From sequence record NC_023719.1: a stretch of DNA of 64,000 nt; one strand, given 5' to 3'. The translations under genes were made by a program, and so were the position numbers. Under the pieces are notes generated by a model. The model was not told where the DNA came from, ran no database searches, and saw nothing but the letters and a program-made list of their open reading frames with translations. Each line of letters begins with the position of its first letter. Position 1 is the stretch's first letter. Positions 4,754 through 38,446 of the stretch are shown one piece after another.

Positions 4754-5851
4754 TTGAGTAGAATTAAAAAAATTAATAATAATAAAAGTCAATCTCTAGA
4801 TTATACTTTAAATGTAGATAATAATGAAGAGTATGGTAATAATGTGGATCCTGAAATTGATTGGACAACTGATGTTGACCTTCAAATGGATCCATCGAAA
4901 AATGATTATAATAAGGGGTATACTATGGATCCATATCAAATGAGATATTATGCTAATAGAAATATATTGCATGAAGTTAAAGCCGGTGAAAACTACGCTA
5001 CAATAGCTGAAAAATACTTTGGACATAAAAATTATGCTAGTAAGTTAGTAGAAATGAATAATGAGTTATCTAATAAAATCTTGAAGCCTGGCATGATGCT
5101 AATTGTAGGCAAAAAACCAGCAAAGGTTGCAGCGAAAGAAGTTAGAGATATCACTTATACTTCTGATAATTTAGCAAAGGAAATTATCACAATTTGGAGT
5201 CAAGTAGATGGACCTCTTCAAGATTTCTTTAATGCATTTACAATGAATAAAATGACAAATGAAATGAAGCAGCAGATAGCAAGTACTCTGAATGAATGGG
5301 GTTACAATGTAATCCCGCATTTAGAAGATAGAACTCCAAGATATGCAGCTAAGAAAGAATTGTTTAATAAGATTGCTAAAATATCTAAAGAGAAAAACAT
5401 GAAAAGAGTTTTCTCTGAATTAAACAACATCTGTCCTGATTCAAAAGTTGTATCTTCAATTTTAAGAGATATTGAAGAATTAAGTCAAAATGGAGTTATT
5501 GTTAAGAAGGCAGAAGCTCAAGGTTTAGTTGATTATTTTAAACAAATTTTCCCTGATGATTACGCTGTATCGTTGGTTGATATAACTCTTAATAAACCTA
5601 ATACTAGTTTTGAAGAATTTGATGAAAACCAAGAAATTTCAGATGAAGCTTTAGATCAAATGGAAAAAATGGATAGTGGTAATCAAGACCCAATGAGTAA
5701 ATCACCAAATGACGGCGGTTTAAACGGTTATGATTTCACTACTCACATGAGATCTGATGGTCCGGGTGGAGTTGCACCTACATCATTTGAAACTGGGCCA
5801 TTTAATGTATATAGAGCGAGCGTTAAAAATACTCGCTTAAAAAAAAAGTAA
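4754..5851 (+). CDS. LysM-domain putative virion protein
   Basis: LysM HEVKAGENYATIAEKYFG...LKPGMMLIV; start moved from 4706 to TTG 4754 (RBS GGAGGT, MSRIKK); ends at an A9 run plus TAA. Confidence 0.7.
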   Translation: MSRIKKINNNKSQSLDYTLNVDNNEEYGNNVDPEIDWTTDVDLQMDPSKNDYNKGYTMDPYQMRYYANRNILHEVKAGENYATIAEKYFGHKNYASKLVEMNNELSNKILKPGMMLIVGKKPAKVAAKEVRDITYTSDNLAKEIITIWSQVDGPLQDFFNAFTMNKMTNEMKQQIASTLNEWGYNVIPHLEDRTPRYAAKKELFNKIAKISKEKNMKRVFSELNNICPDSKVVSSILRDIEELSQNGVIVKKAEAQGLVDYFKQIFPDDYAVSLVDITLNKPNTSFEEFDENQEISDEALDQMEKMDSGNQDPMSKSPNDGGLNGYDFTTHMRSDGPGGVAPTSFETGPFNVYRASVKNTRLKKK

Positions 5852-5889
5852 CCGCTGATTCTATAGAAGATATTCCAGTTTATTTAGTT

Positions 5890-6240
5890 TTGGATGCACT
5901 TTCTAAAGCGTCGCATAATGTTTCTGATTTATTGAATAGAAAACTAGATGTTCCTCCAGTACCAATTGAAACAATTAGAAAACAAGATAACAACAAGGCG
6001 AGTGAAAATGAAAAAATACCTAGTGGGTATAGAATGCCTGTAAATATTGTTGAAGTTTATAGTATTTGGAAAATATTTGTTGAATATGAAAATAATGAAG
6101 TTAACGAAGCTTATGTAGTTATAAGTGCTGATAATATAATTGATGGTTACAAAAAAGGTGAATGGCAACGAGTAGAGTATCGTGGTTTTTATCTCACTTT
6201 TGAAGAAGCAAAAAATGAAATCAATGGATATTTGGAGTAG
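5890..6240 (+). CDS. Hypothetical protein; probably the -1-frame C-terminal extension of the LysM protein
   Basis: No RBS; its frame is open back through the A9 run at 5839-5847. Confidence 0.55.
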   Translation: MDALSKASHNVSDLLNRKLDVPPVPIETIRKQDNNKASENEKIPSGYRMPVNIVEVYSIWKIFVEYENNEVNEAYVVISADNIIDGYKKGEWQRVEYRGFYLTFEEAKNEINGYLE

Positions 6241-6286
6241 AAATTATCTTCTACTCCATAATAATTAAGGGCTAGGTGATATCAAA

Positions 6287-9079
6287 ATGGGAAAATTTAC
6301 AAGTTCGAACTTGTTCACTCAGAATAATAAAGAGAGTGTTCCAACTTGGATGAGCGAACTGGCTGATAATTTAGATGTTACAGAAAAAGAAATAGTAAAC
6401 TGGGAAACAGAGAAAAGAGGTATTTTTGCTGAATCTCAACAAGTTTACCGTCCAGAAGTTACAGCCGATCCACGTTCAATGACAAAGAATTACAATGAAA
6501 GTAGATTAATTTCTGAAGCGAAAATTAATTTAGCTAGATTTCTAACTGGCAAATACTATAAAGTTCAAGCAGCTAATGCAGGTACAAGTTATGTTACATT
6601 AAATGTTAAATTAGATAGTATTGCAGCAGATTTCCAATTCCCTTATGAAATTAATGCATTAGGTAAATTAGCACAAGCTAATACATTTTATGCTAACGAG
6701 GGAGAATATCCATTTAATAAAGGTGGATTTGAAGAATGCGTAGCAGATATTAAGTCTGGTAGAATCAAAACATCTTCTCCCGCTGAAGCTGTTGGTAAAG
6801 CTTTCTTAATTAATAGAGAAGAAATTATTAGACGTTTCAATGGTTATTTAAGACCTGCAACTGAAAAAATTGATGAGCTATTATCTCAAGGAGTTATCAT
6901 AGGTGCTGGTAGTAACACATATGCTTCATTCCATGATGTTGATCAATTATTCCCTCAAATAGAAAAACAAGCTGGTTCTTCTAGAATGGAAGAATTTCAC
7001 TTTGCTCCTAACAAAGAGAAAGTTGCTTCAGCTGAATACAAAACTGCAAATTACTTATCTTTAGATGCTAGTAAAATACTTAGTGATTATTTTGATGATT
7101 ATAAAATCAAAAACAGCAATAGAGATAATAATGAACTATTAGTTAAGGCTACAATCTTGGGTAAAAACGGAATTAGAAAGAATGTTGATTTCTCATTTGC
7201 TATTGAAAATGAGAAAGTTGCTGGTTTAAAAATAGCTGAAATTGATGACAATAGGATGACTATTGCACAATTGATGAATTATTTAGAACAGATTGATAAT
7301 ACAATGCTAAATAAATATCTTTCAACTAACAAATCTGCCTCTAAACATATATATTCTGGCGTAGTTCTTACTAAAAAAGATATTAGTGGGAAATTATTAA
7401 AAGTCGTTGAGTCTAGTAAAGTTGATAATGTTATTAAAAATTGGATTTTAGGTGGTTTTTTAACTCCTATTAATAGTACAACTTATGCAACTGAATATAG
7501 TTTCCAAGAGTTGTTAGCTAATTCAAATGAGGAAGCTTTATCTGATGAACAAATTGAAGAAATTACCGCTGCTCAAAGTCATTTTGGTGAAGGTTTAGAA
7601 GTTGAGACTGATTTAGAAAAACCAAATGAAGAAGTAAGAGAAGTAGAAGATAAAGGTTCTGAAGAATTAAAATTGGTAAACGCTAATGTTTATTTAAGTA
7701 AGCATTTGAAAAAATATACAATAACATCAGCTAAACAAAACAATGAAGAAACTTACACCTTAGATGTAAATTTAATTAACGAAAAAACAGGTACAAGGCA
7801 TAATATTCCATTTGCAGTAAATTTTGATGGAACTAAAGTTACTAGCTGCACAGCTAAAATTGGTAATAAAAACGTATCAATTGAAAAGTTATTAGAATCA
7901 TTTGCTTCAAATGAAGTTTTATCTTTATACTTACAAGATAAAAAAGATAATTTAAATGCTGGCCCTATTGTTATGACAGAAGAAAATATGAAACGTAAAT
8001 TAGCTTCTGTTGTTACAAGTACTGCTATTGATTCAATTATCGAGAAATGGATTAAGAATAAAACGGTAGCAAAGATTAACAGTAATACTTTAGCTAGCCC
8101 TAATTCTTTTGAAGAATTATTAGCGAGTATTGATTCTAATTATTTAATTTCTGAAGAAGAACAAGATGTAGCTAATTATCAAAAGAAACATTTTGGTAAA
8201 AACATAAAAGTTAAAACTGATGAAGTTACCAAAGATACTGGTGTAAGAGAAGCCGAAGAACAAGCTTGGACAGTAGAAAAGAAAAATGCATTTGCTGCAA
8301 ACACTATTGGTAAAATGTTTAAAGATTATAGAATGGTATCAAGCTTTGATAAAGATGATACTAACTTCATTACGGTTGCTACTGTTGTTAATCCAATTAG
8401 TAGTTTAGTAACTAATTTATCTTTCAGATTCTCTCAAGAAGATGGAAAGTTAAAGAATGTTGTAGCTGTATCTGATGAAAACGGAGAAGAAGTAACAATT
8501 GATAAAATTGTAGAGTTATTTGAAAAACAAACTTCTGACATTAATAAACATTTTGTTGCTCATAATAAAACAGATAATAGAATTCATAATGCTAATTTGA
8601 TTAGTAAAACGAATTTAATCAATAAATTGAAAATGGTTGCTAAATCTGAAGATGTACCAGAAATTATTAACAACCTCATGAAAACGAGTGCTATTGAAGC
8701 TATTAACAGCGTTACTTATAGTAGCCAATATCCAATTAATGAATTGATTAATATTGCAAATTCTCAAGGTAAGTTAAATATAGATGCTGGTAAAGAGCAA
8801 ATGAAATTAGCAGCTGGTAGAAGTGAAGATCAAACAATATCGTTTAGTAATAAATATGAAATGGCAACCGATACGAGAAATTTAGATAGAACTGTTAGAG
8901 AGTTAACTCCTCAAATGATAGAAGCAAAAAATCGTTTAGAAACTACAATTAAAAAAGCTGCATCTGTTAAAAAGATCACTAACAAAACTGCTGAACTATT
9001 TACTTTGTCACTAAGTCAAGCTAAAACTGCAACAGATTTAGAGAATGTAGCAAAAGAACTTAAAAAATATTTAGGGTAA
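6287..9079 (+). CDS. Large putative head-associated protein with four ~200-aa internal repeats
   Basis: Repeated blocks at about aa 173, 359, 561, 770; RBS AGGTGA. Confidence 0.65.
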   Translation: MGKFTSSNLFTQNNKESVPTWMSELADNLDVTEKEIVNWETEKRGIFAESQQVYRPEVTADPRSMTKNYNESRLISEAKINLARFLTGKYYKVQAANAGTSYVTLNVKLDSIAADFQFPYEINALGKLAQANTFYANEGEYPFNKGGFEECVADIKSGRIKTSSPAEAVGKAFLINREEIIRRFNGYLRPATEKIDELLSQGVIIGAGSNTYASFHDVDQLFPQIEKQAGSSRMEEFHFAPNKEKVASAEYKTANYLSLDASKILSDYFDDYKIKNSNRDNNELLVKATILGKNGIRKNVDFSFAIENEKVAGLKIAEIDDNRMTIAQLMNYLEQIDNTMLNKYLSTNKSASKHIYSGVVLTKKDISGKLLKVVESSKVDNVIKNWILGGFLTPINSTTYATEYSFQELLANSNEEALSDEQIEEITAAQSHFGEGLEVETDLEKPNEEVREVEDKGSEELKLVNANVYLSKHLKKYTITSAKQNNEETYTLDVNLINEKTGTRHNIPFAVNFDGTKVTSCTAKIGNKNVSIEKLLESFASNEVLSLYLQDKKDNLNAGPIVMTEENMKRKLASVVTSTAIDSIIEKWIKNKTVAKINSNTLASPNSFEELLASIDSNYLISEEEQDVANYQKKHFGKNIKVKTDEVTKDTGVREAEEQAWTVEKKNAFAANTIGKMFKDYRMVSSFDKDDTNFITVATVVNPISSLVTNLSFRFSQEDGKLKNVVAVSDENGEEVTIDKIVELFEKQTSDINKHFVAHNKTDNRIHNANLISKTNLINKLKMVAKSEDVPEIINNLMKTSAIEAINSVTYSSQYPINELINIANSQGKLNIDAGKEQMKLAAGRSEDQTISFSNKYEMATDTRNLDRTVRELTPQMIEAKNRLETTIKKAASVKKITNKTAELFTLSLSQAKTATDLENVAKELKKYLG

Positions 9080-9093
9080 GTGAGGTGATTTAT

Positions 9094-9477
9094 TTGAAAA
9101 AGCCACATATTTCATCTAACAATAGAACTAATTGGTCTTCTCCAGAGGAGACCGTTAGTCAACCTGTTGGTATTAATTATCAACAATTAATAAAAGATAT
9201 TGAGAAAAAAAATATTAAAAGAGAAAGTTCTTTAGTTAGAAAAGATTTAAGGAAAGATTTAAGAAAGACATCATTTCGTGATGAACATTTTTCTAATGAG
9301 TTAGAAAAGAATGATTCTGTAAATAAATTAGATCAAAAGAGTATTATTCCTATTCCTGGAGTAATGTTCGATACGCTTGAAAACAATGATGGTTATAGCG
9401 GGAAGTCAGGTAACTGGAACGATGTAACTAATAATCAACTTACAAATGGTCCACAATGGAATCCTATGACATTTTAA
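9094..9477 (+). CDS. Hypothetical protein
   Basis: ORF; TTG start chosen from RBS GAGGTGA. Confidence 0.5.
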   Translation: MKKPHISSNNRTNWSSPEETVSQPVGINYQQLIKDIEKKNIKRESSLVRKDLRKDLRKTSFRDEHFSNELEKNDSVNKLDQKSIIPIPGVMFDTLENNDGYSGKSGNWNDVTNNQLTNGPQWNPMTF

Positions 9478-9523
9478 GTTATAATCGCTATGGTTTATAA
9501 AACTGCGACTGGCGGTGATAGTA

Positions 9524-9931
9524 TTGACAAGGTTAAAAAAGATAAAACAGCTAGAAGGAAAAAGTTCAAGTAAATTGAGTAAAGTTGCAGCTGCAATGTA
9601 CGATATTGAAACTGAGATTCTGAATAGTGGAGATGCTATTGGCATTTCCGCTAGAACTGTAAATTGGAAGCCTTGGTTTCAAGTATACATAGAATACGGA
9701 ACTGGAACAAGTTCTTTCTATGATGGTCCCGACGCTGATAGAGCTTTTGGTGTTTATAAAGATTTACTTTTAGCATTTAAAGGAGTCAAGGCAGCTGAAA
9801 ATTTTGCTAAAAATATATCTAAATATGAAAAGCAATTAGAAATGTTTACGAATTCACCGGGAAACAAGGGATTAGACAATTATTATCATAACTTATTATT
9901 AAAAAGACCAAGTTTCTTAGGGTATTTCTAA
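9524..9931 (+). CDS. Hypothetical head-associated protein (MTRLKK tag)
   Basis: TTG start after SD-like GGCGGTGA; N-terminal RLKK...KVAA. Confidence 0.55.
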   Translation: MTRLKKIKQLEGKSSSKLSKVAAAMYDIETEILNSGDAIGISARTVNWKPWFQVYIEYGTGTSSFYDGPDADRAFGVYKDLLLAFKGVKAAENFAKNISKYEKQLEMFTNSPGNKGLDNYYHNLLLKRPSFLGYF

Positions 9932-9951
9932 AAGAAATATGAGGTGAAATA

Positions 9952-10170
9952 ATGAAAAAATCCAGATTAAAGAAGGTTTCGTTTGATGGTGGTGGAGGTA
10001 ATCCAGCTGGTGGAGATTTCCCAATGCCAATTCTTTTAAATGGCCCAATGGAAAAAGTTGACAATAAAGATGAAATCAATCAAGTAACTTTTGGACCATC
10101 TATTTCAAGAGAATGGTTATTTGAAAAACCTCTGGATAATCCCGAGTGGAGTTTAAGGAGTTCTGATTAA
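9952..10170 (+). CDS. Small hypothetical head-associated protein (MKKSRLKKVS tag)
   Basis: RBS GAGGTG; tag motif. Confidence 0.55.
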   Translation: MKKSRLKKVSFDGGGGNPAGGDFPMPILLNGPMEKVDNKDEINQVTFGPSISREWLFEKPLDNPEWSLRSSD

Positions 10171-10266
10171 AAAAAAGAATAAAATTTTATTAAAAATAAT
10201 ATATTTTATGGTTTTAAAACTAATAATAATAGTAGGTCTAAATAAATAATTGAAAATTTTTAGGAG

Positions 10267-11457
10267 TTGACAAGAATGAAGAATAAGTCTGTTTCATCAT
10301 CAAATAAAGGTTTTGCGGGCTGGATAGAAGATTTCATCACTGGTTTAGCTAATAAAGAGGCTAATTTAAATAATCAAAATACTGAAGAAGAAGTATTAGC
10401 GGAAATTAATCTTAAAGATTTAGATAAAGTTGTTTGGAAAGAAGAATCTTTTGGTGTTCATTTTGATGAAAAAGGTGCAAGTCTCATTAATGAATTTGGA
10501 AATGTAGTAAGAACTTTACAAGATTGCAAAACAATTGAAGAAGTCGATAAACAGCTTAATAGTAGTGAAGTTATTGTTGCGAGCGATGAAGGGTTTGATG
10601 ATGAAGAAGAAGATTTAACTATTGAGTTAGATAAGATCGCAAATTCTCTTGCTGAAGAAAATGTAGAAATGACTAACACTACACCTGAACATGTTGATAA
10701 TTCACAAAATACGGTTGTACCAGAACAAACTGAACAAGTAAACCAAACAGAACAAACTACAACTGCTTCTACAGAAGATGAAACTGAAAAAGTTGAAGAA
10801 AAAGAAGATGACGCTGTAATAGCAGCTATTGCTGATGGTTTTGAACAATTAGAAGCAAATGTTGCCGCGTTAACTGAACGTTTAGCTTTAATTGAGCAAG
10901 AATATGCTCGTAATCCAGTAATAGAAGATATTTCTACTAACTCTAATGAAGAAGAAGTTAAACATTTTACAGAAACTGCAGATGAAACTGCTAAAAATAT
11001 AGCTAATGAAAATGCTGTTGATATTACTTCCCCTGCTGGAAGAGTTGAATTATCTAACCAATCTAAAGAAACATCAGAAGTTCAAGATATTGTTACACAG
11101 GATACTCCAAAAACTACTGAAAATGTTGAACTTACTACTGAAGAATCTACTGAACAAGAATTAAAACAAGAAGATTCTGAAGCTGTAGAAGAAGTTAAAG
11201 AAGAAAAACCAGAAGAAAACAAAGAAGAAGAAAAAACTGCGAATACTCAAGATAATGAAGATATCGAAGAAGAACCAAAAGTTGAAAAACTTGCTGGCGT
11301 GGCAGAAAAGATTTTCCAAAAAGGTATTTGTCCTGAATCTGGAGAAGAATTAGTTAAATCTAAAACTGTTGGTAACTTCTTAGGTGTTTATTCTACTGCT
11401 GGTGTCGAGTATGCTGTTGATTTAAATTCTGGTGAAATTTTTAAATACTTAAAATAA
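10267..11457 (+). CDS. Acidic putative scaffold/core protein
   Basis: RBS AGGAG; very Glu/Thr-rich, short coiled coil; head module. Confidence 0.5.
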   Translation: MTRMKNKSVSSSNKGFAGWIEDFITGLANKEANLNNQNTEEEVLAEINLKDLDKVVWKEESFGVHFDEKGASLINEFGNVVRTLQDCKTIEEVDKQLNSSEVIVASDEGFDDEEEDLTIELDKIANSLAEENVEMTNTTPEHVDNSQNTVVPEQTEQVNQTEQTTTASTEDETEKVEEKEDDAVIAAIADGFEQLEANVAALTERLALIEQEYARNPVIEDISTNSNEEEVKHFTETADETAKNIANENAVDITSPAGRVELSNQSKETSEVQDIVTQDTPKTTENVELTTEESTEQELKQEDSEAVEEVKEEKPEENKEEEKTANTQDNEDIEEEPKVEKLAGVAEKIFQKGICPESGEELVKSKTVGNFLGVYSTAGVEYAVDLNSGEIFKYLK

Positions 11458-11565
11458 TCTAGATATTGAAAAAGAATTATAGCATGGTAATTAACTTATA
11501 AAAACAAAGTGCATATTATTTAATATTAGATTATTCAGAACTGTTACGAAGGAGAAAGTAATATA

Positions 11566-11922
11566 ATGAGTAGAAAAAGACGTTTAATAAGTCAATATGA
11601 TAATAATATGAATGATATGGACTTTTTAATGAGTTTAGATCCTGATTTAAGAGAATATTTTGATGACGGTAATCGATTATTAAAGACAAAATCGACTAAG
11701 AAGAAAAGAAAGAAAAAGGCCAGCTTCACAATCGGAGATCAAGTTGAAGTAAATGATTCATATGGTACAGTAATATTTGGTCCATATGAATCAGAAACTG
11801 GTAAAGATACTTATGAAATTGAATGTGAAGACGGTTCTATAGTTACATCAGAAGATGATGGTGTTTCAATTAAAGTATATGTAGCTCCAATTGAAGAACC
11901 AGAAAAAGATGATTTATTATAA
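11566..11922 (+). CDS. Hypothetical protein with SH3/KOW-like domain
   Basis: RBS AAGGAG; FTIGDQVEVNDSYGTV beta-barrel-like segment after KKAS. Confidence 0.5.
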   Translation: MSRKRRLISQYDNNMNDMDFLMSLDPDLREYFDDGNRLLKTKSTKKKRKKKASFTIGDQVEVNDSYGTVIFGPYESETGKDTYEIECEDGSIVTSEDDGVSIKVYVAPIEEPEKDDLL

Positions 11923-11936
11923 ACGGAGTTGTTATT

Positions 11937-12203
11937 ATGAAACGTTTAATTAGCAAAACCGCTGCACGTTATGCTGCTTCAGGTGAGATGGAAAAACTAA
12001 TTGGCTACTTAGTTACAAGAAGTTCTGGTTTAAGATTAGAAAAACAACATTTTGATGATATTATCGAGCATTTTAATGAGAATGGCGGAAGTTTAAAAGG
12101 TATACAAGGTAAAGAAAAAGAAGATAAAGGTTTTTATTATGAAAAGCTTCATAACTCTATAGATAAGATTTTGAAAAAACACAAACTAAAAAATAAAAAT
12201 TAA
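11937..12203 (+). CDS. Small hypothetical head-associated protein (MKRLISKTAA tag)
   Basis: RBS CGGAG; tag motif. Confidence 0.55.
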   Translation: MKRLISKTAARYAASGEMEKLIGYLVTRSSGLRLEKQHFDDIIEHFNENGGSLKGIQGKEKEDKGFYYEKLHNSIDKILKKHKLKNKN

Positions 12204-12335: not shown

Positions 12336-14282
12336 GTGAGTGATCGTATCATCACGAATTTTACAGAAAAAGATTTCCAAATGGCTAAGCAAGCAGCATC
12401 AAAACCTAATGGCATGTCTAATAACCATGGCGGCGGAAGTTTGATGCGTAGTGCGTTGTTACAAGATAAGAACGGTTTACCTAAAAATATACAAAGAAAA
12501 ATGGCTTCCCCTTCAGTAGGTATGGGTAATATATCTATGGGTAACCCAAGTTTCTATCACCCAGTATTCCAAAACATGAACATCATGTTGCCACGTGATA
12601 GACGCGAAAGAAATGAATGGTGTAGACATTTCTATAGAACAGAACCAATTATAGCTACTTCATTAGATCTTCATACAGAATTCCCGATTTCAGATTTTAA
12701 CAATGTTGTATCTGATGATGGGATTAAAGAGTTTTTTGATTACATGGCATTTGAAAGATTAGACTTAGTTAATTTATTGTTAGATATTGGTTTGGAGTAT
12801 TGGAAATTAGGAGATGTATTCCCATTTGGTCAATTAAATGAACAAGACGGTATGTGGGAAAGATTTGTTATTTTAAATCCTGACTATGTTGACATAAAAG
12901 CATCTATATTAGCTGGTGATCCAGTTATTGAATTAATACCTGACGAAACTGTAAAAGCTATTATTGATGCTGGTCCTCGTGGCGATTACTCTAGTATTTA
13001 TAGTCAATTCCCAGAGGATGTAGTGAGACAAGTGAGAATGGGAAGAAACATTAGACTTGATAATAGATTAGTTTCTCACATTGCTCATAAAGCGTCTCAA
13101 TATGAGACTTGGGGAACTCCAATTATGATGCGTTGTTTCAAAACTTTAATCTATAAAGACAAACTAAGAGAAGCTCAAAACGCAATTGCGAGTAGACATG
13201 TTACTCCATTAAGGATATTCAAAGTTGGCGCACCAGGTGAACCTATGCCTTCGCAAGAAGATTTAGATTCTTTACGTGATACTTTAATCCAAGCTGATGA
13301 TGATCCAAACTTCATGCTTGTATATCACTATGCATTACAAACTGACTATGTAGGTTCTGCTGGTAGAATTTTACCATTAAACCAAGAATTTGATTTCATT
13401 CAAAAAGAGCTTATGAACGGTTTAGGCATTAACCAAGCTATGTTAAACGGTGAAGGTCCAACATATTCAAATGCTCAAGTTGGTATGGATGCATTAGCTA
13501 GAAGATACATGTCATATCGTTTAAGATTAGAGTCTTGGATTAGACAAAAAGTTTATAGACCAATTTCTGAAATACAAGGTTTTTATAAACCTACAAATGG
13601 CACTGTCGCAAGAAGATACTTAAGTTCAAAAGAACAAAGAAAACTTGCTGATAGAAAAGAAATGCAATTAATTGTTCCTGAGATTTCTTGGAGTCAACAA
13701 GATTTAACTTCAAATCAATCTGTTCTTAACTTTATTCAACAATTACAATCTAAGGGACTTGTTTCTATGAGCACGATATTACCAATGCTTAAACTTGACC
13801 CAGAAACAGAGCGTAAAAATCTTGAGCAAGAACGTGGTTCTGTATTTGATACTAATGCTCCTAAAGCACCAAGCGGTGGAGGCGCACCTGGAGGACCTAG
13901 TGGTGGAGCACCAAAACCTCCAACAACGCCTGACAGCCCTGGCCCTAATAATGGAAATAAACCGGGCGGGCCACCAACGCCAGGTGGGCCAAAAGGAAAT
14001 GATGCGCCGGGTAAAGCTGATCCAAGTTCATTTGGATTCCCAGGTAAAGGCGCTCCTCCTGAAAACAAAGCTCCATCGCCAAATGATAAGAGTCAAGGTG
14101 ACAGTCCAGCTCCTACACCATCGTCTGCACCTACGCCACCACCAGTTGGACCAAAGCACTCTAGTTTATCGGATTTTTTAGCAAAAGACGGGGTTCAAAA
14201 AGAAGAGAAGATAGCGTCTATGGACTCCCGTTCTTCAGTAAAAGTCAGACGCTATCAGAAGGAAGACAAGACGGAGAAATAA
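12336..14282 (+). CDS. Portal protein with Pro/Gly-rich C-terminal tail
   Basis: Position between terL and protease; YRTEPIIATSLDLHTEFP and FGQL..W..F..LNPD portal-like segments. Confidence 0.8.
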   Translation: MSDRIITNFTEKDFQMAKQAASKPNGMSNNHGGGSLMRSALLQDKNGLPKNIQRKMASPSVGMGNISMGNPSFYHPVFQNMNIMLPRDRRERNEWCRHFYRTEPIIATSLDLHTEFPISDFNNVVSDDGIKEFFDYMAFERLDLVNLLLDIGLEYWKLGDVFPFGQLNEQDGMWERFVILNPDYVDIKASILAGDPVIELIPDETVKAIIDAGPRGDYSSIYSQFPEDVVRQVRMGRNIRLDNRLVSHIAHKASQYETWGTPIMMRCFKTLIYKDKLREAQNAIASRHVTPLRIFKVGAPGEPMPSQEDLDSLRDTLIQADDDPNFMLVYHYALQTDYVGSAGRILPLNQEFDFIQKELMNGLGINQAMLNGEGPTYSNAQVGMDALARRYMSYRLRLESWIRQKVYRPISEIQGFYKPTNGTVARRYLSSKEQRKLADRKEMQLIVPEISWSQQDLTSNQSVLNFIQQLQSKGLVSMSTILPMLKLDPETERKNLEQERGSVFDTNAPKAPSGGGAPGGPSGGAPKPPTTPDSPGPNNGNKPGGPPTPGGPKGNDAPGKADPSSFGFPGKGAPPENKAPSPNDKSQGDSPAPTPSSAPTPPPVGPKHSSLSDFLAKDGVQKEEKIASMDSRSSVKVRRYQKEDKTEK

Positions 14283-14335
14283 TAATTGTAGAACAGGGCT
14301 GGAGAGAATTGCTTGAGAGAATGGGGGTGAGCAAA

Positions 14336-15685
14336 ATGGTTAAGCAATACATTTTATCAATAGATAGTGAAATGAAAGAATATTTTGGTGAAAAAATTTC
14401 ACTCCTTGAAAATCAAATGAAGGATGTTTTCTCTCAAGCAAATCTAGCTATTAATAATTCAAGTTATTTATATTTAATAGAAAACTTCATAAAAGACATT
14501 CTAGATACAAGTATTTCACTAATTGATTATTATGTTGATGGTATTTACAATAGTGGAAAAACAGTCAGTAGGAAAAAATTGAAATTGCAAAAACAAATCC
14601 CAGATGATGGAGAAAGATACGCGTTTACTGATAAAGATAAGTTATTTATTGAAAAATACAAATCAGAAAAATTAGTATCGTTACAATTAGAATTACAAAA
14701 AGCAATATTTGCATATATCGAAAACAAATTATCTAATGAAATTGATAACAATGATTCAAAAGTTATTGATTTAATTAAAGAAGACCTAGATAGCTCTTAT
14801 GAAGAAATTATAGATATTTTAGTTAGAGAAATACTAATGTTATTTAAAAGATCCCAAATAGAAGAGTATAAAAATTTAAATATCAAAGAAATATCTATAA
14901 TCACTGAAGATGAATCACTATGTTGTCCAGTTTGTATAGCTAAGTCTAATAAAATTTTAAAAATAGATGAAGTAATTAACGATTTTGGTTTAAAGGATGG
15001 TAATCACCATTCATTCTGTAATTATTCGTTAGATCCAATAATTAGTCTTGGTAAAAATGAAGAACTAAATAATGAAGTTAATACAAATATTGATTTTAAT
15101 ATTTTATCTTTATCTTTTAAAAATGTACCAATTGAACTTGAATATAGAATTAATAAGTTAGTAAGTAAATTTAAGATATATGGTAAGAAGTATTTAAGAG
15201 AAATTGAATTTAATTTTGTTAAAAACATCACAGAAGAAAACGATTGGTTTAATTCTGTTAAGTCTCATTATTCAAACTCTGAAAACAAATCTGCTATTGA
15301 TAATGTTTTACAGGCTCAGGATGATTTAAAAGATAAAACTATGTCTTTTGATTTTAATGACAAATGTTATATATCTATCAATTCGCTCGATTATCAATCT
15401 GTAGAAGAAATTATTACTAGAAAACTTATGAATGATTCATTAGTTATTGATAATTGGGTAACTGATAGATATCAAACTAAGATAGATAGTAAGTATGTTG
15501 GAAATGGTATTGTGATATATCAAGATCCGTTTGTAAATCAACTGGCTCAAGATTCACCTTTTGATTATTTATTAGAATCAATTATTGTTTATGTAAATAA
15601 ACCTAAGCAATTAGAAGTATTAGACAAGGAAATTTTTGATTACATTAAAGAAAAAATCTTCAATGGAATTCAATTTTTTAAGTAA
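14336..15685 (+). CDS. Head morphogenesis (SPP1 gp7/MuF-like) protein with extra C-terminal domain
   Basis: Directly after portal; CCPVC...HHSFC resembles the MuF C-x2-C...HPxC motif; start moved to ATG 14336 (RBS GGGGGTGA). Confidence 0.5.
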   Translation: MVKQYILSIDSEMKEYFGEKISLLENQMKDVFSQANLAINNSSYLYLIENFIKDILDTSISLIDYYVDGIYNSGKTVSRKKLKLQKQIPDDGERYAFTDKDKLFIEKYKSEKLVSLQLELQKAIFAYIENKLSNEIDNNDSKVIDLIKEDLDSSYEEIIDILVREILMLFKRSQIEEYKNLNIKEISIITEDESLCCPVCIAKSNKILKIDEVINDFGLKDGNHHSFCNYSLDPIISLGKNEELNNEVNTNIDFNILSLSFKNVPIELEYRINKLVSKFKIYGKKYLREIEFNFVKNITEENDWFNSVKSHYSNSENKSAIDNVLQAQDDLKDKTMSFDFNDKCYISINSLDYQSVEEIITRKLMNDSLVIDNWVTDRYQTKIDSKYVGNGIVIYQDPFVNQLAQDSPFDYLLESIIVYVNKPKQLEVLDKEIFDYIKEKIFNGIQFFK

Positions 15686-15696
15686 GGTGTTTAGAT

Positions 15697-16071
15697 ATGA
15701 ATGATAATAAAAATTTAGCAATTATTTGTGATATACGAAATAGGACTCCAATTGGAGTAATATGTTCTTGTCCAGTTACAGGCGATCTAGCTTTCTCAAC
15801 AGAGAATAAAATGTTAGAAGAAACATTAGAAATAATTCTTAGCAGTAAATCATTTCTTTATTCAAAAGAAAAAGTAAATGAACAATCAATGATAAATAGA
15901 GAAGAAATCAATCCCAATGATCATTATTACTTGATGGCAATTGATTTCTCTCTGCCATTTCCTTGGAGAATACTAGGAATAACTTCTGTAGAAGGGGATA
16001 TAGAACAAATAGTAGGAAATGCCATTGAAATGCTAAAAGAAGGAGGAAACAATTTTGAAACGATTGATTAA
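15697..16071 (+). CDS. Hypothetical protein
   Basis: ORF with RBS AAGGTG. Confidence 0.5.
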   Translation: MNDNKNLAIICDIRNRTPIGVICSCPVTGDLAFSTENKMLEETLEIILSSKSFLYSKEKVNEQSMINREEINPNDHYYLMAIDFSLPFPWRILGITSVEGDIEQIVGNAIEMLKEGGNNFETID

Positions 16072-16369
16072 AAAGTCTAACCATGTTGAACCATCTATTC
16101 ATAATGAGGTGGAAGACAAGATTATACATCCAAACACAAATATAAATGAGAATCAAAACCCATCATTTTTATTAACAAGACAACTATTTGCAGATACTGC
16201 TTTCACGCCTACTGCAACTATTAGTTATCAATTTGCTAGAAAAATTGAAAATGGTGAGTTTAGTCACCTTGGTTCTATTGAAGAAGCAAGGGGTAATTGG
16301 TCAGAATGGTTGAACGCTTTAGATAGTTTTTTAGAAGAATCAGGTCACAAAGGTTTAAAAAAAAACTAA
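16055..16369 (+). CDS. Hypothetical head-associated protein (MKRLIKKS tag), 0-frame part
   Basis: RBS GGAGG; ends at an A9 run plus TAA. Confidence 0.6.
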   Translation: MKRLIKKSNHVEPSIHNEVEDKIIHPNTNINENQNPSFLLTRQLFADTAFTPTATISYQFARKIENGEFSHLGSIEEARGNWSEWLNALDSFLEESGHKGLKKN

Positions 16370-16455
16370 GATTAGCAGCAAATCAAAATAATTTCTATGG
16401 CGATAAATATGTTGATTCTTTATCTAGTGATAATTATTTAGATAGAGAAAAAGAT

Positions 16456-16701
16456 ATGCCAAATAGACCAGCAAAATCCCCAAGGACAGAAAAAGAGCAT
16501 TTTATAAATGAAAGTTTTCAAATCGCTAAAGATTTAATTTATAGTTTGCCGATTGTACCTAGATATGATTTAATATCTCAATTAGCACAAGATATTGAAC
16601 GTGGAGACTTTGATGATTTAGGTGGCTTCTCAGAAAATAGACAAGGTTACTTAGATAGAGCTAAAACAATATTACGCTTAAGAAATATTATTATAAGTTA
16701 G
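16456..16701 (+). CDS. Hypothetical protein; probably the -1-frame continuation of 16055, with a paralogous domain
   Basis: Frame open from the A9 run at 16357-16365; LAQDIERGDFDDLG resembles FARKIENGEFSHLG of 16055; weak RBS. Confidence 0.55.
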   Translation: MPNRPAKSPRTEKEHFINESFQIAKDLIYSLPIVPRYDLISQLAQDIERGDFDDLGGFSENRQGYLDRAKTILRLRNIIIS

Positions 16702-16839
16702 TTTTCTATATAAAAAATGTTGGTTATTACTGACATTTTTTATTTTTTTGTAATAATAGATAAGAATAACAGTATTGATTATAAGAAGATTGTTTTTATT
16801 TGTTATATTTAAAAGAAAATTTGTGGTGGTGAACACGAA

Positions 16840-17742
16840 ATGATAAAATATACATTTCCTGTTAAGATTGCAGGACATAGTAATATGGTATCAAAAGTTA
16901 CATTAGAGAAGAATAGAAGACCAGACTTATCTTTATTAAATAAATCCAATTCGCTTGGTTTAGTGAAAACAGCTGCTAAGGTTGTAAAGATTGCTCCTAA
17001 AGAAGATGATTTTTTATATGTTCGAGTTAGAGCGGTATCTGCGGGTAATGTTATAGAACACAAAAATGGTTTTGCTGAATTAGTTGAAATGCAAGATCTT
17101 ATGAATAACTTAGATAAATACGCGGAGAAAATTCGTGGAGCAAATGATAACGGGGATTTTTTCTCTTACGATGAATTAAAAAGAACTTATAAAACATTTA
17201 TTGGTAAAGCAGCATTCGTTGATCATCAAAATGAAAATGTTGAAGAAGCTAGAGGGATTATTTTAGATGCTATTTGGAATGAGCGTGGTAAATTTGTAGA
17301 ATTACTTATCGCTGTTGATAAAAAAGCATTCCCTGAACTAACTCGTGGAATTGAAATGGGATATATCTCTGATGTTTCAATGGGATGTCGTTGTGAAAAA
17401 TCGATTTGTTCTATTTGCGGAAATGAAGCCATTGTTGAAGAAGATTTCTGCGATCATATTTTAACCGCTAAAGGTAGAACTATTGATAACAAACCTGTTT
17501 TTGAAGATAACTTAGGTATTGAATTTTTTGAAATCAGTTTTGTTAGTCAAGGTGCAGATAGACAAGCTAAAATCCTAGAGAAAGTTGCATCTAAATCTGG
17601 TATTAAAGGTATTGAAGCATTAACAAATGATATTTCTAAACCAGAATCAGTGTTATTAAAAATAGCTAGTGAAAAAAATAAGCGCGAAGATGCTAAATCA
17701 GTATCATTTAAAGATAAGCTTAACAACCTCCCTTGGAGTTAA
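16840..17742 (+). CDS. Prohead (capsid maturation) serine protease with Cys/His insert
   Basis: FVDH, DVSMGC, FEISFV..GAD..AKI assemblin/HK97-type motifs; CSICGN..CDH insert; EKVAS near the C-terminus. Confidence 0.8.
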   Translation: MIKYTFPVKIAGHSNMVSKVTLEKNRRPDLSLLNKSNSLGLVKTAAKVVKIAPKEDDFLYVRVRAVSAGNVIEHKNGFAELVEMQDLMNNLDKYAEKIRGANDNGDFFSYDELKRTYKTFIGKAAFVDHQNENVEEARGIILDAIWNERGKFVELLIAVDKKAFPELTRGIEMGYISDVSMGCRCEKSICSICGNEAIVEEDFCDHILTAKGRTIDNKPVFEDNLGIEFFEISFVSQGADRQAKILEKVASKSGIKGIEALTNDISKPESVLLKIASEKNKREDAKSVSFKDKLNNLPWS

Positions 17743-17764
17743 AATTTTATAAAGGGGAAATATT

Positions 17765-18253
17765 ATGAGTAAAAAAATATCACGTCTTAAGAAAACAGCA
17801 TTAATGCCTACTCAAATGTTTGAATCTCAACTAGATCAAATTAGCGACAAAGGGAGAGATGTTTTAAAAGCTTTAGAAGATTATAAGTTCTTTGTTGACC
17901 AAACTTCAAGAGTTATGAAAAATGATCCAGCTTTAATTGAAGTTATTGTTGGTAAGAAAAAGAATTTAGAGGAAGCATCTGCTAAAATTTATGATATAGT
18001 TTTTGATATTGAAAATCTTGACATTTCTGCTTTGTATGAAAGACAAGAAGAAAAGACTAATGAAAACCAAGGTATTCAAGTTCCTGAAAGTCAAGATGAT
18101 TCCAATAAGGAAGAGGTCAAGGAAGAACCTGAAAAAGATTCCAATGAGGAAGTTCCTAAAGAAGAAAACAAAGAACAAGAAAATCCTAATGAATCTAAAG
18201 ATGAGAATACTAAGAATGAAGAAAAACAGGAAGAAAAAGATAAAAAAGAATGA
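17765..18253 (+). CDS. Hypothetical head-associated protein (MSKKISRLKKTA tag), acidic tail
   Basis: RBS AAGGGG; tag motif; Glu/Lys low-complexity C-terminus. Confidence 0.55.
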   Translation: MSKKISRLKKTALMPTQMFESQLDQISDKGRDVLKALEDYKFFVDQTSRVMKNDPALIEVIVGKKKNLEEASAKIYDIVFDIENLDISALYERQEEKTNENQGIQVPESQDDSNKEEVKEEPEKDSNEEVPKEENKEQENPNESKDENTKNEEKQEEKDKKE

Positions 18254-18267
18254 GAGGGAGAATTGAA

Positions 18268-19728
18268 GTGGAAGAAAAGTTCGATGCGAGAAAAAAATTA
18301 GCAAGAGCCGAACAACAAGAATACGCTCACCAATACACTCCAAAGACAAGGGAAGAAAATTATCAATACCCCGATGAAGATAAAAGATTTACTAACAAAG
18401 TTAAAGATGAAACAAATCTATATGGTGTACAACCAGAAGATTCTGTCTTTGCCGGCCCAACTGAAGGTAGAATAAAAGCGATTGTTGATGTGAAAAAAGT
18501 AACTGAAGATCATAGACAACGCTCTTATAAGATTAAGACTCAACCTCCAATTTTTAGTAGAACTGATATTGATAAGACTGAAGATGTTAACAACACTCAT
18601 CGTGAAGATGAAATCAATAAATTAAGAGAAACTTCTAAATCATTTGCTCAGCAAATTGAAAAAGAACAAAGTGTTGATATTTCAAATCCTATTGAAAGAT
18701 TTTCAGAAGAAATTGATCCCTCACTTGGTGAAGATGATTGTGAAATCGTATTTAATGTTGGCGATCAAGTTGTTGATGTTGAAGAAAATATTAATGGTAA
18801 AATTACTTTTGCAAATAGTAAGAGATTATCTGTTGTTTGGGAAGATAATACAAAAGAAAGATTTGCTATTAAAGAAGCAAAAGAATTCTTAAAAATAACA
18901 AAAGCTTATGTTGGCGATGTTCAAGAACAGATTGATCCTATACACACTGAAGATTGGCCTAAAAATGAAGTGTTAGAGAATAAAATTGATAACACTCTTA
19001 GTTCCATGGAGCAAGAAGAAGAAATCGACCAGAAAACAGCTAATATAGATTTAGAAAAAATTAAACTGCAAAGACAGGTTAATGAACTAGAAAATAAAGT
19101 AAATGAAATAGATGTTATGAAAGTTAAAACTAAAGCTGCTAATGAAGTTATCACACTTATGCAGAAAAAAGGTATATTAAGTAATAACGAAGCTGAAGTT
19201 AAAAATCAATTTGACTCTATTATAGAAATGGACGATGTTTCTTTTGAGGCATTTAAAAATGCAATTATTTCTAAAAAGGTTCTTGACGATGACATGTATG
19301 CTTTCTTAGATGAAGAAGAAGATTTTTCTGACATCGAAGATGGTAATGAATTCGCAAAACAAAGAGAAGAGATCAAAAAAACAGCTAAGAGCGCGCCTAG
19401 ATCATTAGGTGGAATCGAAATGGGTGACACTAGTTTATTTGAAAATGGTGGATTATCTAACTTCAAAGGTAATATTGGAGATTTCTCTGGTGCAGCGACT
19501 TCTATGAGTTCATCTACTAAAGAATCAAGAAGTTTATCTGCAGCTGCAGAAGGGAACAAAAGAAAACCTATTGAAAGAAAATCAAACTCATTAGATATGT
19601 CAGGTTTCCAAGATATACAAGGTCTAAAGACACCAATTAATATTCCAAATAGAGAATTATCTGCAGGTAAAAAATTCTCTGAATTATTTAGTGATGGATT
19701 TGGTTGGTCAGGAGTACCAAAAAGATAA
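18268..19728 (+). CDS. Putative capsid scaffolding protein
   Basis: After the protease; coiled coil LEKIKLQRQVNELENKV; acidic; GTG start chosen from RBS GAGGGAG. Confidence 0.5.
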   Translation: MEEKFDARKKLARAEQQEYAHQYTPKTREENYQYPDEDKRFTNKVKDETNLYGVQPEDSVFAGPTEGRIKAIVDVKKVTEDHRQRSYKIKTQPPIFSRTDIDKTEDVNNTHREDEINKLRETSKSFAQQIEKEQSVDISNPIERFSEEIDPSLGEDDCEIVFNVGDQVVDVEENINGKITFANSKRLSVVWEDNTKERFAIKEAKEFLKITKAYVGDVQEQIDPIHTEDWPKNEVLENKIDNTLSSMEQEEEIDQKTANIDLEKIKLQRQVNELENKVNEIDVMKVKTKAANEVITLMQKKGILSNNEAEVKNQFDSIIEMDDVSFEAFKNAIISKKVLDDDMYAFLDEEEDFSDIEDGNEFAKQREEIKKTAKSAPRSLGGIEMGDTSLFENGGLSNFKGNIGDFSGAATSMSSSTKESRSLSAAAEGNKRKPIERKSNSLDMSGFQDIQGLKTPINIPNRELSAGKKFSELFSDGFGWSGVPKR

Positions 19729-19739
19729 ACTATTTTACT

Positions 19740-19771
19740 AAGCTATAGGTAATTAGACCTATAGCTTTTTT
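19740..19771 (+). terminator. Rho-independent terminator
   Basis: AAGCTATAGGT-aattag-ACCTATAGCTT plus T run. Confidence 0.85.
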
Positions 19772-19864
19772 GTTAGACAATGGTAATATTATAGAAATTC
19801 AAAGATCATGTATTAAATTAACGGAGGTTTAGGCTTCCAAAATATATTTAAGAGGTGAATTTTT

Positions 19865-20611
19865 ATGTACAAAATAGCTATTTGTGCTGGTCATGGTTTC
19901 AACACTCCTGGTAAGAGAACTCCAGATGGTGAAAGAGAATGGAGCTTTAACAATAAGTTAGTTGTTGCTTTCGTTAACACTATGAATCAGTATGAGAATG
20001 TTACTGTTAAGCGTTATGATGATCCAACGGGTAAAACTGACGTGCCTTTAATTACTCGTACTAATGGGGCAAACGCTTGGGGAGCAAACATCTACATTTC
20101 ATTCCACCACAACGCTAATACTGCTAAATGGGGTACTTGGACAGGTGTTGAAACTTTCTACTATCCAGGTTCTACGACTGGATTGAACTTAGCTAAAGCT
20201 ATTCACCCAGCAGTTGTTCAATCTTATGGATTGAAAGATAGAGGCGTTAAGTCTGGAAATCTTCACATCGTTAGAGAAACAAAAATGCCAGCTATTTTAA
20301 TCGAAGGTGGATTCATGGATTCTACTATCGATATTAAAAAACTTAGAAGCGACGCTGTATTAAAAGCTGCTGGTGAAAACATTGCTCATGCTGTAGCTAA
20401 GTACGCTGGTTTAAAGAAAAAATCTTCTACTTCTACTCCTAAACCGCCAACTCCTACTACTCCAAATGCTGCAACTTACACTGTAGTTAAAGGAGATACT
20501 CTGTATGGAATTTCTCAAAAATTTGGAATCAGTGTCGATACTATCAAATCATTAAATGGTTTGAAAACTAATACTATCTCTATTGGGCAGGTATTAAAGG
20601 TAAAAAAGTAG
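19865..20611 (+). CDS. Endolysin: N-acetylmuramoyl-L-alanine amidase (Amidase_3) plus LysM
   Basis: AGHG, GEREW, YISFHHNA, AILIEGGF amidase motifs; C-terminal LysM YTVVKGDTLYGISQKF. Confidence 0.92.
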   Translation: MYKIAICAGHGFNTPGKRTPDGEREWSFNNKLVVAFVNTMNQYENVTVKRYDDPTGKTDVPLITRTNGANAWGANIYISFHHNANTAKWGTWTGVETFYYPGSTTGLNLAKAIHPAVVQSYGLKDRGVKSGNLHIVRETKMPAILIEGGFMDSTIDIKKLRSDAVLKAAGENIAHAVAKYAGLKKKSSTSTPKPPTPTTPNAATYTVVKGDTLYGISQKFGISVDTIKSLNGLKTNTISIGQVLKVKK

Positions 20612-38366: not shown

Positions 38367-38446
38367 TTTTTTTTAAAAAAAAAATGATTATATTTTTTAA
38401 AAGGGTTCTTATATTCATCATGAATAACTCATGAAGGAGATTTACG

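Follow-up and report, generated by a model that had tools for sequence, protein, structure and literature searches.

Three gene junctions in the head and lysis region of Bacillus phage G are probably conserved programmed recoding sites, at which slippage on a run of A closely followed by a stop codon would give a short and an extended form of each protein. From comparison of sequences, we put the probability of this reading at about 0.8. The window, the whole stretch of DNA that was analysed, is bases 1-64000 of phage G, and it was compared with about twenty uncultured relatives of this phage. An earlier note on the same DNA had proposed that three proteins are made in short and long forms by recoding, and this is supported, as the relatives keep both the break and the run. 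Its expression "recoding system" is fair for one signal that is used repeatedly, but not for dedicated machinery. To our knowledge, no other megaphage has been cultivated, and the phage G annotation serves as a reference.

Three junctions with an open -1 frame

The features of the three sites are as follows.

4754..5851, + strand: gp5, short 0-frame product of site 1; 365 aa, LysM domain at residues 73-118, ends RLKKK + TAA
5839..5851, + strand: putative recoding signal of site 1; A9 or A10 here in all 17 distinct relatives
5848..6240, + strand: -1 extension of gp5; 130 codons + stop, contains annotated gp6
16055..16369, + strand: gp17, short product of site 2; 104 aa, small helical domain, paralog of gp18, ends GLKKN + TAA
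16357..16369, + strand: putative recoding signal of site 2; same design in L004, L046, L047 and L048
16366..16701, + strand: -1 extension of gp17; 111 codons + stop, contains annotated gp18 (16456-16701)
19865..20611, + strand: gp22, short endolysin of site 3; 248 aa, Amidase_3 and LysM, ends KVKK + TAG
20602..20611, + strand: putative recoding signal of site 3; joined CDS in the record, A9-G-TAA in L045 and L048
20608..21534, + strand: -1 extension of the endolysin (gp23 part); 308 codons + stop, with repeat domain, glucosaminidase and C-terminal domain
20611..20675, + strand: possible downstream hairpin of site 3; weak evidence, spacer only 2 nt

The anatomy described before was confirmed at each junction. 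At site 1 (gp5/gp6) the A9 run lies at 5839-5847, the heptamer A_AAA_AAG at 5842-5848 and the stop TAA at 5849-5851, and the 3' end of gp5 reads CGC TTA AAA AAA AAG TAA. Site 2 (gp17/gp18) has A9 at 16357-16365, the heptamer A_AAA_AAC at 16360-16366 and TAA at 16367-16369, with the gp17 end reading GGT TTA AAA AAA AAC TAA. Site 3 (gp22/gp23) is shorter, with A6 at 20602-20607, the heptamer A_AAA_AAG at 20602-20608 and TAG at 20609-20611; here gp22 ends with GTA AAA AAG TAG. All three heptamers are in phase with the 0 frame, and they are also in phase in the relatives. At site 3, the domain boundary that is split in phage G bears A9-G-TAA in L045 and L048, again in the -1 relation. Runs of at least nine A's occur only three times in the 64-kb window, namely at site 1, at site 2 and at one intergenic place, which is the A10 run that had been located at 38385-38394; its actual position is 38375-38384, directly after a T8 run. 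The junction at site 2 was as described before, but its last sense codon is AAC (Asn), so that tandem ribosomal slippage would give the corrected junction peptide ..KKN-L... A ..KKK-L.. peptide at this site would point either to a P-site slip or to an mRNA with one A more. In the GenBank record, the frames are already joined at site 3 and in the tail-chaperone genes, and sites 1 and 2 are unannotated; RefSeq lists both the short gp22 and, for site 3, a joined CDS (gene 23, 19865..21534).

The -1 frame had been described as open into the next annotated ORF, and it indeed continues uninterrupted to the end of that ORF at all three sites (6240, 16701 and 21534), opening after a stop that precedes the junction codon by 24-42 nt. 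The segments that are open ahead of any usable start have 62, 30 and 87 codons at sites 1, 2 and 3, respectively. In the -1 frame of 22 ordinary genes there were 0.159 stops per codon and the longest open run was 38 codons. The open -1 frames at the three sites exceed chance. No ATG, GTG or TTG was present in the -1 frame before 16456 at site 2 or before 20869 at site 3, and at site 1 the sole candidates before the annotated ATG at 6034 are TTG at 5890 and TTG at 5932. The absence of a convincing RBS was borne out by the SD:anti-SD duplex energies of the candidate starts, which are -4.7 (6034), -4.4 (16456), -1.6 (20869), -1.7 (5890) and -2.6 (5932) kcal/mol, against a median of -11.4 kcal/mol in ordinary genes (n=27, 1-26 kb; 26/27 at or below -6.5). 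Random positions gave a median of -3.1 kcal/mol. Among contigs, the called starts of the downstream genes vary, with no conserved start or SD. For the parts of the -1 frames that precede any start codon, candidate tryptic peptides include VTADSIEDIPVYLVLDALSK, LAANQNNFYGDK and VEDVTADSFYR.

Two of the sites had also been noted to share a downstream sequence. Within the window, the 12-mer GTAACYGCTGAT is indeed confined to 5848 and 20617, and its translation at site 1 is a conserved peptide motif, (V/I)(T/I)A(D/E). With one mismatch allowed, pairs of random 40-mers had a 12-mer of this kind in common in 176 of 20000 trials; the sharing near sites 1 and 3 is real and only mildly unusual (p about 0.009 per pair).

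Conservation and selection among relatives

Besides the relatives compared at site 1, there are 22 clusters of gp5 homologs, of 343-374 aa, whose gene calls end with ..KKK, ..KKN or ..KKKK. Relatives without the run at site 1 were not found among 17 distinct sequences: 14 have A9/A10 with the -1 relation, and the 3 others, which are more distant, have one ORF with the run kept in frame. The gp5 homolog and the extension are one ORF in L009-L015 and P0013. On the portal tree the split state fills a clade of 14 rows with support of 100/100, and the split and fused states of this site define sister clades. Homology of the gp5 extension to relatives is seen from residues 1-3 onward, and the annotated gp6 (6034-6240, 68 aa) is only the C-terminal half of the extension domain. 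The AF2 model of the gp6-part domain (pLDDT 77.6) has a predicted fold that covers residues 11-126 of the extension. Foldseek with this model found nothing in PDB below E = 0.1 and only the self-hit in BFVD, to gp6, which covers just the second half of the domain. Pfam and PHROGs gave no matches for the gp6 part, gp17 or gp18, and PDB profile searches with alignments A1 and A3 found none.

Site 2 is split at A9 in 5 genomes (phage G, L004, L046, L047 and L048) and is a single ORF in 4 genomes, which are L045 (in-frame A9), L041 (in-frame A10), L003 and L049. The gp17 and gp18 pieces are colinear with these natural single ORFs of 217-225 aa, and residues 2-30 of the gp17 extension are conserved though its first start codon is at 16456. 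The junction is predicted to sit in a disordered linker between two helical domains; the AF2 model of a natural fused gp17-gp18 homolog has a pTM of 0.35 and was used for the layout of domains and linker only. According to the portal tree, the state of this site changed at least four times, once between the sisters L047 (A9, split) and L041 (A10, fused), which are one A apart. L041 differs by a single A from L004 as well. The site flips between split and fused among close relatives, and selection for its split state may be no more than weak.

For gp22, matches were obtained to Amidase_3 (E = 2.8e-35) and LysM (E = 2.8e-17), and Pfam Glucosaminidase matches residues 107-233 of the extension. 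The profile of PHROG 435 matches gp22 with positions 112-303 and then the extension with positions 309-504. Homology of the extension to continuous endolysins begins at residues 2-18, ahead of the first start codon, which is residue 88. Three sequences are split at site 3, namely phage G (A6G+TAG), L045 and L048 (both A9G+TAA), and continuous endolysin ORFs of 591-669 codons are present in L004, L041, L047 and L049. A two-form endolysin (amidase-LysM and amidase-LysM-glucosaminidase) produced via a conserved frameshift would be unusual and would offer a handle on the dosing of lysis enzymes. We did not find a paper on a frameshifted endolysin in the literature searched.

The extensions evolve under purifying selection, like the upstream genes, with dN/dS of 0.14-0.38 vs 0.16-0.21 at dS about 1. 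The values are 0.139 for the gp5 extension vs 0.158 for gp5, 0.227 for the gp17 extension and 0.23 for the endolysin extension; the segments ahead of any start codon gave 0.17-0.32. As for whether relatives conserve the break and the run, which the earlier note had proposed as a check, -1 junctions at A runs were found in 14, 5 and 3 sequences for sites 1-3. A census of runs with at least nine A's in 18 related stretches gave 42 runs. Of these, 25 sit at -1 junctions, no run sits at a +1 junction, and 8 are in frame, for the most part at the same sites in the fused state. In 25/25 junctions the run and the 0-frame stop are 0-9 nt apart, and at split junctions the run always has at least nine A's except at site 3 of phage G. 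A fourth site with a run of at least nine was found in 4 distant relatives. L040 was rejected as a +1 case, as its downstream gene has its own SD and ATG. Further runs of at least eight A's at -1 junctions were not found in phage G in the parts scanned (1-314 kb and 447.5-497.5 kb). The A6 runs at 9062, 18242 and 30621 were rejected as ordinary neighbouring genes, and the genes downstream of 9062 and 18242 have their own SD.

Mechanism and rival explanations

We suggest that most ribosomes would stop at the 0-frame stop and give short gp5, gp17 and the Amidase_3-LysM endolysin gp22, and that a fraction would enter the -1 frame within the A run and give gp5-gp6, gp17-gp18 and the two-enzyme endolysin gp22-gp23. 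The minimal signal would be an A run (A9-A10; A6 at site 3 of phage G) that is read as Lys codons and ends in G, C or T, with the stop directly behind it or no more than three codons away. While a ribosome pauses at the stop, which is decoded slowly, the peptidyl-tRNA-Lys, or the tRNAs of the P and A sites jointly, may slip back one base on the A run ("slippery run plus shifty stop"). Some transcripts of A9/A10 runs probably also receive an additional A from the host RNA polymerase, and their ordinary translation would lead to the same long protein. We infer that the ribosome is to be favoured as the slipping machine, with the polymerase contributing at A9 runs. The annotated tail-chaperone frameshift of phage G, gp181/gp182, reads TTA AAA AAC TAG; the same heptamer-plus-stop design with six A's supports a ribosomal mechanism that needs no long run. 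The natural single-ORF homologs show the parts to work as a single chain.

Conserved flanking RNA structure was not found at site 1 (downstream fold z = +0.14; RNAalifold -1.2 kcal/mol with 14 sequences), and a conserved upstream SD-like element was not found there either. An upstream hairpin at 5814-5838 (-9.4 kcal/mol, z = -1.33) was rejected, as it is not evident in the sequences of relatives. The downstream fold had z = -1.53 at site 2, and the fold of 20609-20698 at site 3 had an MFE of -19.8 kcal/mol (z = -1.95; 8/200 shuffles as good). A scan at E <= 1 gave no match to an Rfam frameshift element at the sites. With no conserved stimulator or SD-like element at site 1 and no Rfam match, the classical dnaX-type cassette is absent. 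Stimulatory elements are common in the -1 frameshift family and are not obligatory.

It is possible, though we hold it to be less probable, that transcriptional slippage is the main process wherever the run is A9/A10, as at sites 1 and 2 and, in relatives, at site 3, and that the ribosome acts only at the A6 sites. Host RNA polymerase would add one A on the T9 template, and standard translation would then give the long form. This agrees with the run of at least nine at site 1 (17 sequences), at the split site 2 (5), at site 3 of L045 and L048 and at the fourth site (4), and nine A's match the known length: such a run fits the RNA:DNA hybrid of 9-10 bp and the length for efficient slippage by bacterial polymerase (PMC5009743). 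At site 1 at least nine A's are strictly kept, which is beyond the need of the heptamer and suggests that something other than the ribosome may do most of the slipping at sites 1 and 2; the site 2 heptamer, A_AAA_AAC, is far less shifty than A_AAA_AAG in E. coli (PMC5009743). A conserved RNA stimulator, moreover, is not present. Fused relatives hold the run in frame, so that slippage there would give the short form, and both states seem viable, to judge from the sisters L047 (A9, split) and L041 (A10, fused). However, site 3 and the tail-chaperone site of phage G use six A's, and the close stop seen in 25/25 junctions is unneeded for polymerase slippage. KKK is conserved as protein too and AAA is the preferred Lys codon in this genome of 30% GC, so part of the run conservation may be a by-product.

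One-base homopolymer errors of sequencing or assembly, with the true genes continuous, are barely conceivable as the source of the breaks. Data from 454 and nanopore sequencing tend to err in homopolymers, each of the three breaks is within an A run, and one A is all that separates L041 from L004 and L047 at site 2; but the same break in the same direction is found in 14, 5 and 3 independent assemblies, mostly Illumina metagenomes, with 0 junctions of the +1 type. Single contigs (L041, L045) carry in-frame plus out-of-frame A9/A10 runs, and near-identical phages from different samples agree (L009-L013; L032 and L041). Phage G genomes were resequenced at over 500x (PMC12484599), and the constant numbering offset in resequenced phage G (gp1 = ps583, gp14 = ps596, gp19 = ps601, gp22 = ps604, gp27 = ps609) implies the same ORF breaks there; the count of ORFs is unchanged as well. 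Sequencing error and pseudogenes are effectively excluded as cause of the breaks. It is also quite improbable that the breaks are real and no fusion protein is made, the downstream parts being dead remnants or genes started separately through non-canonical codons or reinitiation. Gene callers do find the downstream ORFs, site 3 of phage G could stem from A7 losing one A, and gp22 alone is a complete endolysin. Particle proteomics detected gp22 and not gp23 (PMC12484599), an absence that says little because endolysin is not expected in virions. On the other hand, purifying selection at dS about 1 acts also before any start codon, conservation sets in with the codon that directly follows the run, neither a start nor an SD is conserved, gene callers choose different starts in different contigs, natural single-ORF homologs exist, and the annotated gp6 would miss the first helix and strand of its AF2 fold. 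Phase variation of the DNA, in which replication slippage would make mixed A9/A10 phage populations and the long forms would come from a minority genotype, is very improbable. The repeated changes of state at site 2 (at least four on the portal tree, once between sisters) would fit it, but site 1 is split throughout the deep 14-row clade, the run length is identical in independent assemblies of the same phage, and a protein ratio set by a genotype mixture would not pass through single plaques.

Programmed recoding at the run and the stop remains our preferred reading. We further speculate, as an idea that is itself unlikely, about a two-way ratio switch, in which the A9/A10-plus-stop cassette would yield both forms from a split or a fused genome and one-A flips would invert the ratio. 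If this is true, the cassette, in at least four head/lysis gene pairs, may couple stoichiometry or lysis enzyme composition to host physiology.

Significance and comparison with known systems

In the head module, gp5/gp6 is almost certainly one recoded gene and gp17/gp18 another, and the annotated starts of gp6 and gp18 are very likely wrong. The same correction of annotation applies to many uncultured relatives, in which gene callers cut at the lysine run. As the family has in-frame and out-of-frame versions, it would be a good Gram-positive system to separate polymerase slippage from ribosome slippage.

The sites resemble E. coli dnaX in the in-phase A_AAA_AAG, the tRNA-Lys and the two products that each gene would give in a set ratio. 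However, in dnaX the heptamer is flanked by an SD-like element upstream and a hairpin downstream, neither of which is conserved at site 1, and its shift truncates the protein, whereas the shift in phage G would extend it and the 0-frame stop abuts the run. C-terminally extended minor structural proteins are made by recoding in T7 (10A/10B), Lactobacillus phage A2, which requires two -1 shifts (PMC5009743), and Listeria phages, but with other genes and other signals. Transcriptional slippage at the A9/T9 runs of Thermus thermophilus dnaX and IS elements is similar in the conserved run of 9-10, in needing no RNA structure and in the extra A that leads to the -1 frame. In phage G, by contrast, the run is tightly coupled to the 0-frame stop, and the A6 versions (site 3 and tail chaperone) are too short for efficient polymerase slippage. 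The tail chaperones of the lambda G/GT type share the conserved short-plus-long logic, and gp181/gp182 of phage G, with A_AAA_AAC and TAG, has the same design as sites 1-3, but the genes at sites 1-3 are not chaperones: they are a head-module LysM protein, a duplicated helical-domain protein beside the prohead protease and an endolysin.

A precedent in design is the "Slippery runs, shifty stops" of Weiss, Dunn, Atkins and Gesteland in 1987, reportedly with synthetic constructs in E. coli, in which a homopolymeric run is directly followed by a stop, giving the P-site tRNA time to slip. The phage G signal differs in being natural, conserved and present at several genes of one phage family, and for the recoding field it would be a natural, conserved and structure-free "run plus stop" signal.

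Reading frames at the three junctions

The window was identical, in the same coordinates, to bases 1-64000 of Bacillus phage G (JN638751 / NC_023719). The region encodes terminase, peptidase, a sigma factor, gp4-gp13, portal gp14, gp15-gp18, prohead protease gp19, gp20-gp21, a lysis cassette (gp22-gp25), and decoration and major capsid proteins. Slippery heptamers directly followed by a stop had been described at three gene ends, and the sequence is as described at all three:

5839-5847, given strand: site 1, A9 run; gp5 ends TTA AAA AAA AAG TAA
16357-16365, given strand: site 2, A9 run; gp17 ends TTA AAA AAA AAC TAA
20602-20607, given strand: site 3, A6 run; gp22 ends GTA AAA AAG TAG

At site 2 the junction stands, with Asn and not Lys as the last residue. 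The A10 run noticed elsewhere exists but is located at 38375-38384. It is intergenic, directly follows a T8 run (the two together span 38367-38384, TTTTTTTTAAAAAAAAAA), is the only other run of nine or more A's in the window, and may belong to a terminator or a promoter.

The -1 frame is open without interruption through the whole of the next annotated gene at all three sites, as had been claimed, and the stop closing it lies 24-42 nt upstream of each junction. There is no ATG, GTG or TTG in this frame before 16456 (site 2) or 20869 (site 3), and site 1 has just two TTG codons, both without a Shine-Dalgarno (SD) sequence. The reported lack of a convincing ribosome binding site was borne out by SD strength: candidate starts gave -1.6 to -4.7 kcal/mol, cleanly distinct from ordinary genes (median -11.4; random positions -3.1). 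The open stretches ahead of any usable start comprise 62, 30 and 87 codons at sites 1, 2 and 3. The -1 frame of ordinary genes meets a stop about every six codons, with a longest open run of 38 codons; the open stretches are therefore coding. A hairpin, GCGAG(N11)CTCGC, is located directly upstream of the site 1 run (5814-5838; -9.4 kcal/mol, z = -1.33), and was not evident in the relatives' sequences.

Conservation of the split genes in related phages

Relatives were collected with the portal protein as anchor and 10-kb flanks, from Logan assemblies and from metagenomes of IMG/VR, JGI and ENA. This gave about twenty distinct stretches (designated by L handles), with portal identity to phage G of 60-84%. 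At E <= 1e-50 the portal matched 311 clusters of homologs, many of them on 250-560 kb contigs of Logan and ENA assemblies, and therefore phage G belongs within a large uncultured family. This lineage is much larger than the lone relative named in a 2025 paper, 'Moose phage W30-1'.

Homologs of gp5 and of its -1 extension were present in every stretch covering site 1. The two parts were split in -1 relation in 14 distinct sequences (A9 in 11, A10 in three), with the 0-frame stop 0-9 nt past the run. Several of these relatives have a -1-frame stop directly upstream of the run, so the shift is possible only within it. Both parts were fused in the three most distant sequences (L009-L013, L014 and L015), which retain A9 or A10 at this position, in frame. 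In the portal tree the split state forms one 14-row clade (100/100 support) and the fused state its sister clade. A search of 5.8 billion proteins gave 22 further clusters of gp5 homologs (41-77% identity), in which every gene call terminates directly past the lysine run, and also a few fused forms. Conservation of the extension begins at the first codon past the run and includes a motif, (V/I)(T/I)A(D/E)xIExIPL; its predicted fold begins at residue 11, and the annotated 68-aa gp6 is the second half only.

At site 2, gp17 and gp18 are paralogs, each a small helical domain, and the run is within a predicted disordered linker joining them. The split pieces are colinear with natural proteins of 217-225 aa.

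State of site 2 in the two-copy clade
Split, A9, stop adjacent or one codon on: phage G, L004, L046, L047, L048
Fused, A9 in frame: L045
Fused, A10 in frame: L041
Fused without run: L003, L049

The sister genomes L047 (split) and L041 (fused) differ at this run by one A. Distant relatives carry the domain as a single copy or in arrays. The two-copy form of phage G represents one stage within a repeat family that varies. The domain also occurs inside single ORFs of 426-434 codons (L038 11766-13046; L015 12989-14293), with at least two matching segments in L038.

At site 3 the short product, gp22, is in itself a complete Amidase_3-LysM endolysin, and the extension adds a glucosaminidase together with a repeat domain and a C-terminal domain. 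A single 556-position PHROG profile spans gp22 and then the extension in order. L045 and L048, with LysM after the amidase, are split at the identical domain boundary in -1 relation (A9-G-TAA). Continuous endolysin ORFs (591-669 codons) that lack both the run and an annotated LysM domain were found in L004, L041, L047 and L049, and more distant viral contigs contain the glucosaminidase part within continuous ORFs of 480-700 codons. Among Pfam-annotated relatives, LysM is listed only where the endolysin is split (G, L045, L048) and not where it is continuous (L047, L049). The N-terminal part of the endolysin varies among close relatives; that of the continuous 669-aa protein of L004 (19188-21197) is dissimilar to gp22 (phage G 19865-21534: Amidase_3).

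The protease gene may also be interrupted in some relatives. In L048 (14867-16772), where the gp19 homolog of about 300 aa is expected, two called ORFs (179 and 135 aa) flank a GIY-YIG/NUMOD3 homing-endonuclease ORF (ORF calls only), and in L014 (13707-14963) protease homology lies in two pieces about 420 nt apart. Either arrangement points to introns in the protease gene or to mobile elements inserted there.

Selection, reuse of the signal and mechanism

dN/dS of phage G against its closest relatives (dS about 0.7-1.4)
Site 1 extension: 0.14-0.19
Site 2 extension: 0.23
Site 3 extension: 0.23-0.36
Genes upstream of the sites: 0.16-0.21
Segments ahead of any start codon: 0.17, 0.22, 0.32

The low ratios of the extensions mean that they are translated where out of frame, and rule out dead remnants. 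Separate initiation of the downstream parts is unlikely, because starts are missing and conservation begins at the run. Sequencing error was rejected: independent assemblies show the breaks again, without exception in one direction, single contigs carry in-frame as well as out-of-frame runs, repeated assemblies of one phage agree (L009-L013; L032 and L041), and resequenced phage G genomes keep the ORF numbering.

Across 18 stretches, every run of nine or more A's (read as A) was classified. Of 42 runs, 25 lie where two long open frames meet in -1 relation and none where they meet in +1 relation; eight are in frame (for the most part these sites when fused), seven intergenic and two unclassified. 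A fourth -1 junction of the A9/A10-plus-stop kind is present in four distant relatives between the gp11 and gp12 homologs (L007 9185-9194; L008 9613-9621; L035 9094-9102; L038 9150-9158), with about 90-107 codons upstream and about 90 downstream, for example GCA AAA AAA AAA TAA and TCT AAA AAA AAA TAA. Phage G gp11/gp12 have no such junction. In the 364 of 497 kb of phage G scanned, such runs lie at junctions at sites 1 and 2 only; the remaining ones are intergenic, mostly terminator-like, or inside small ORFs.

We favour ribosomal -1 slippage as the common mechanism, with RNA polymerase slippage probably contributing at the long runs. The heptamers are in phase, two phage G sites have just six A's, and the tightly adjacent 0-frame stop would be useful to the ribosomal mechanism alone ("shifty stop"). 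For the polymerase speaks the maintenance of the run at nine or more, which fits both the length of the hybrid and the threshold known for polymerase slippage (PMC5009743). At site 1 the run and its stop are the sole conserved nucleotide feature: the downstream sequence folds no better than shuffled sequence, and the 14 aligned junctions share no common RNA structure. There is a modest hairpin at site 3 (z = -1.95), and no Rfam frameshift element matched. The sequence G-TAA-C-(T/C)-G often follows the run at sites 1 and 3 in different phages (A9 GTAACTG...; window 5848-5859 and 20617-20628; L004, L045, L048, L049). It may be a preferred weak-termination context, a linker peptide (V-T-A/E) or a trace of cassette copying between genes.

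Comparison with annotated frameshifts

The record gives site 3 as a joined CDS (gene 23, 19865..21534) plus the short gp22, and likewise joins gp181/gp182, the tail assembly chaperone, which is the sole frameshift mentioned in a 2025 re-analysis of phage G (PMC12484599). Sites 1 and 2 are recorded as separate genes (gp5, gp6 and gp17, gp18). The annotated starts of gp6 (6034-6240) and gp18 (16456-16701) have no SD sequence and truncate conserved protein sequence, and are very likely mis-annotations. As far as the literature searched shows, what is new is that sites 1 and 2 are recoded genes, that all three sites are conserved across a large uncultured family, that site 2 flips between fused and split, and that site 3 targets an endolysin. 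The signal type itself is already known, and the record already covers site 3 and the tail chaperone. The chaperone frameshift, GAA TTA AAA AAC TAG (record 111280-111291, outside the window; 47280-47291 in L043, a further stretch of the phage G record), has an A_AAA_AAC heptamer followed at once by the stop, which is the design of sites 1-3 with six A's.
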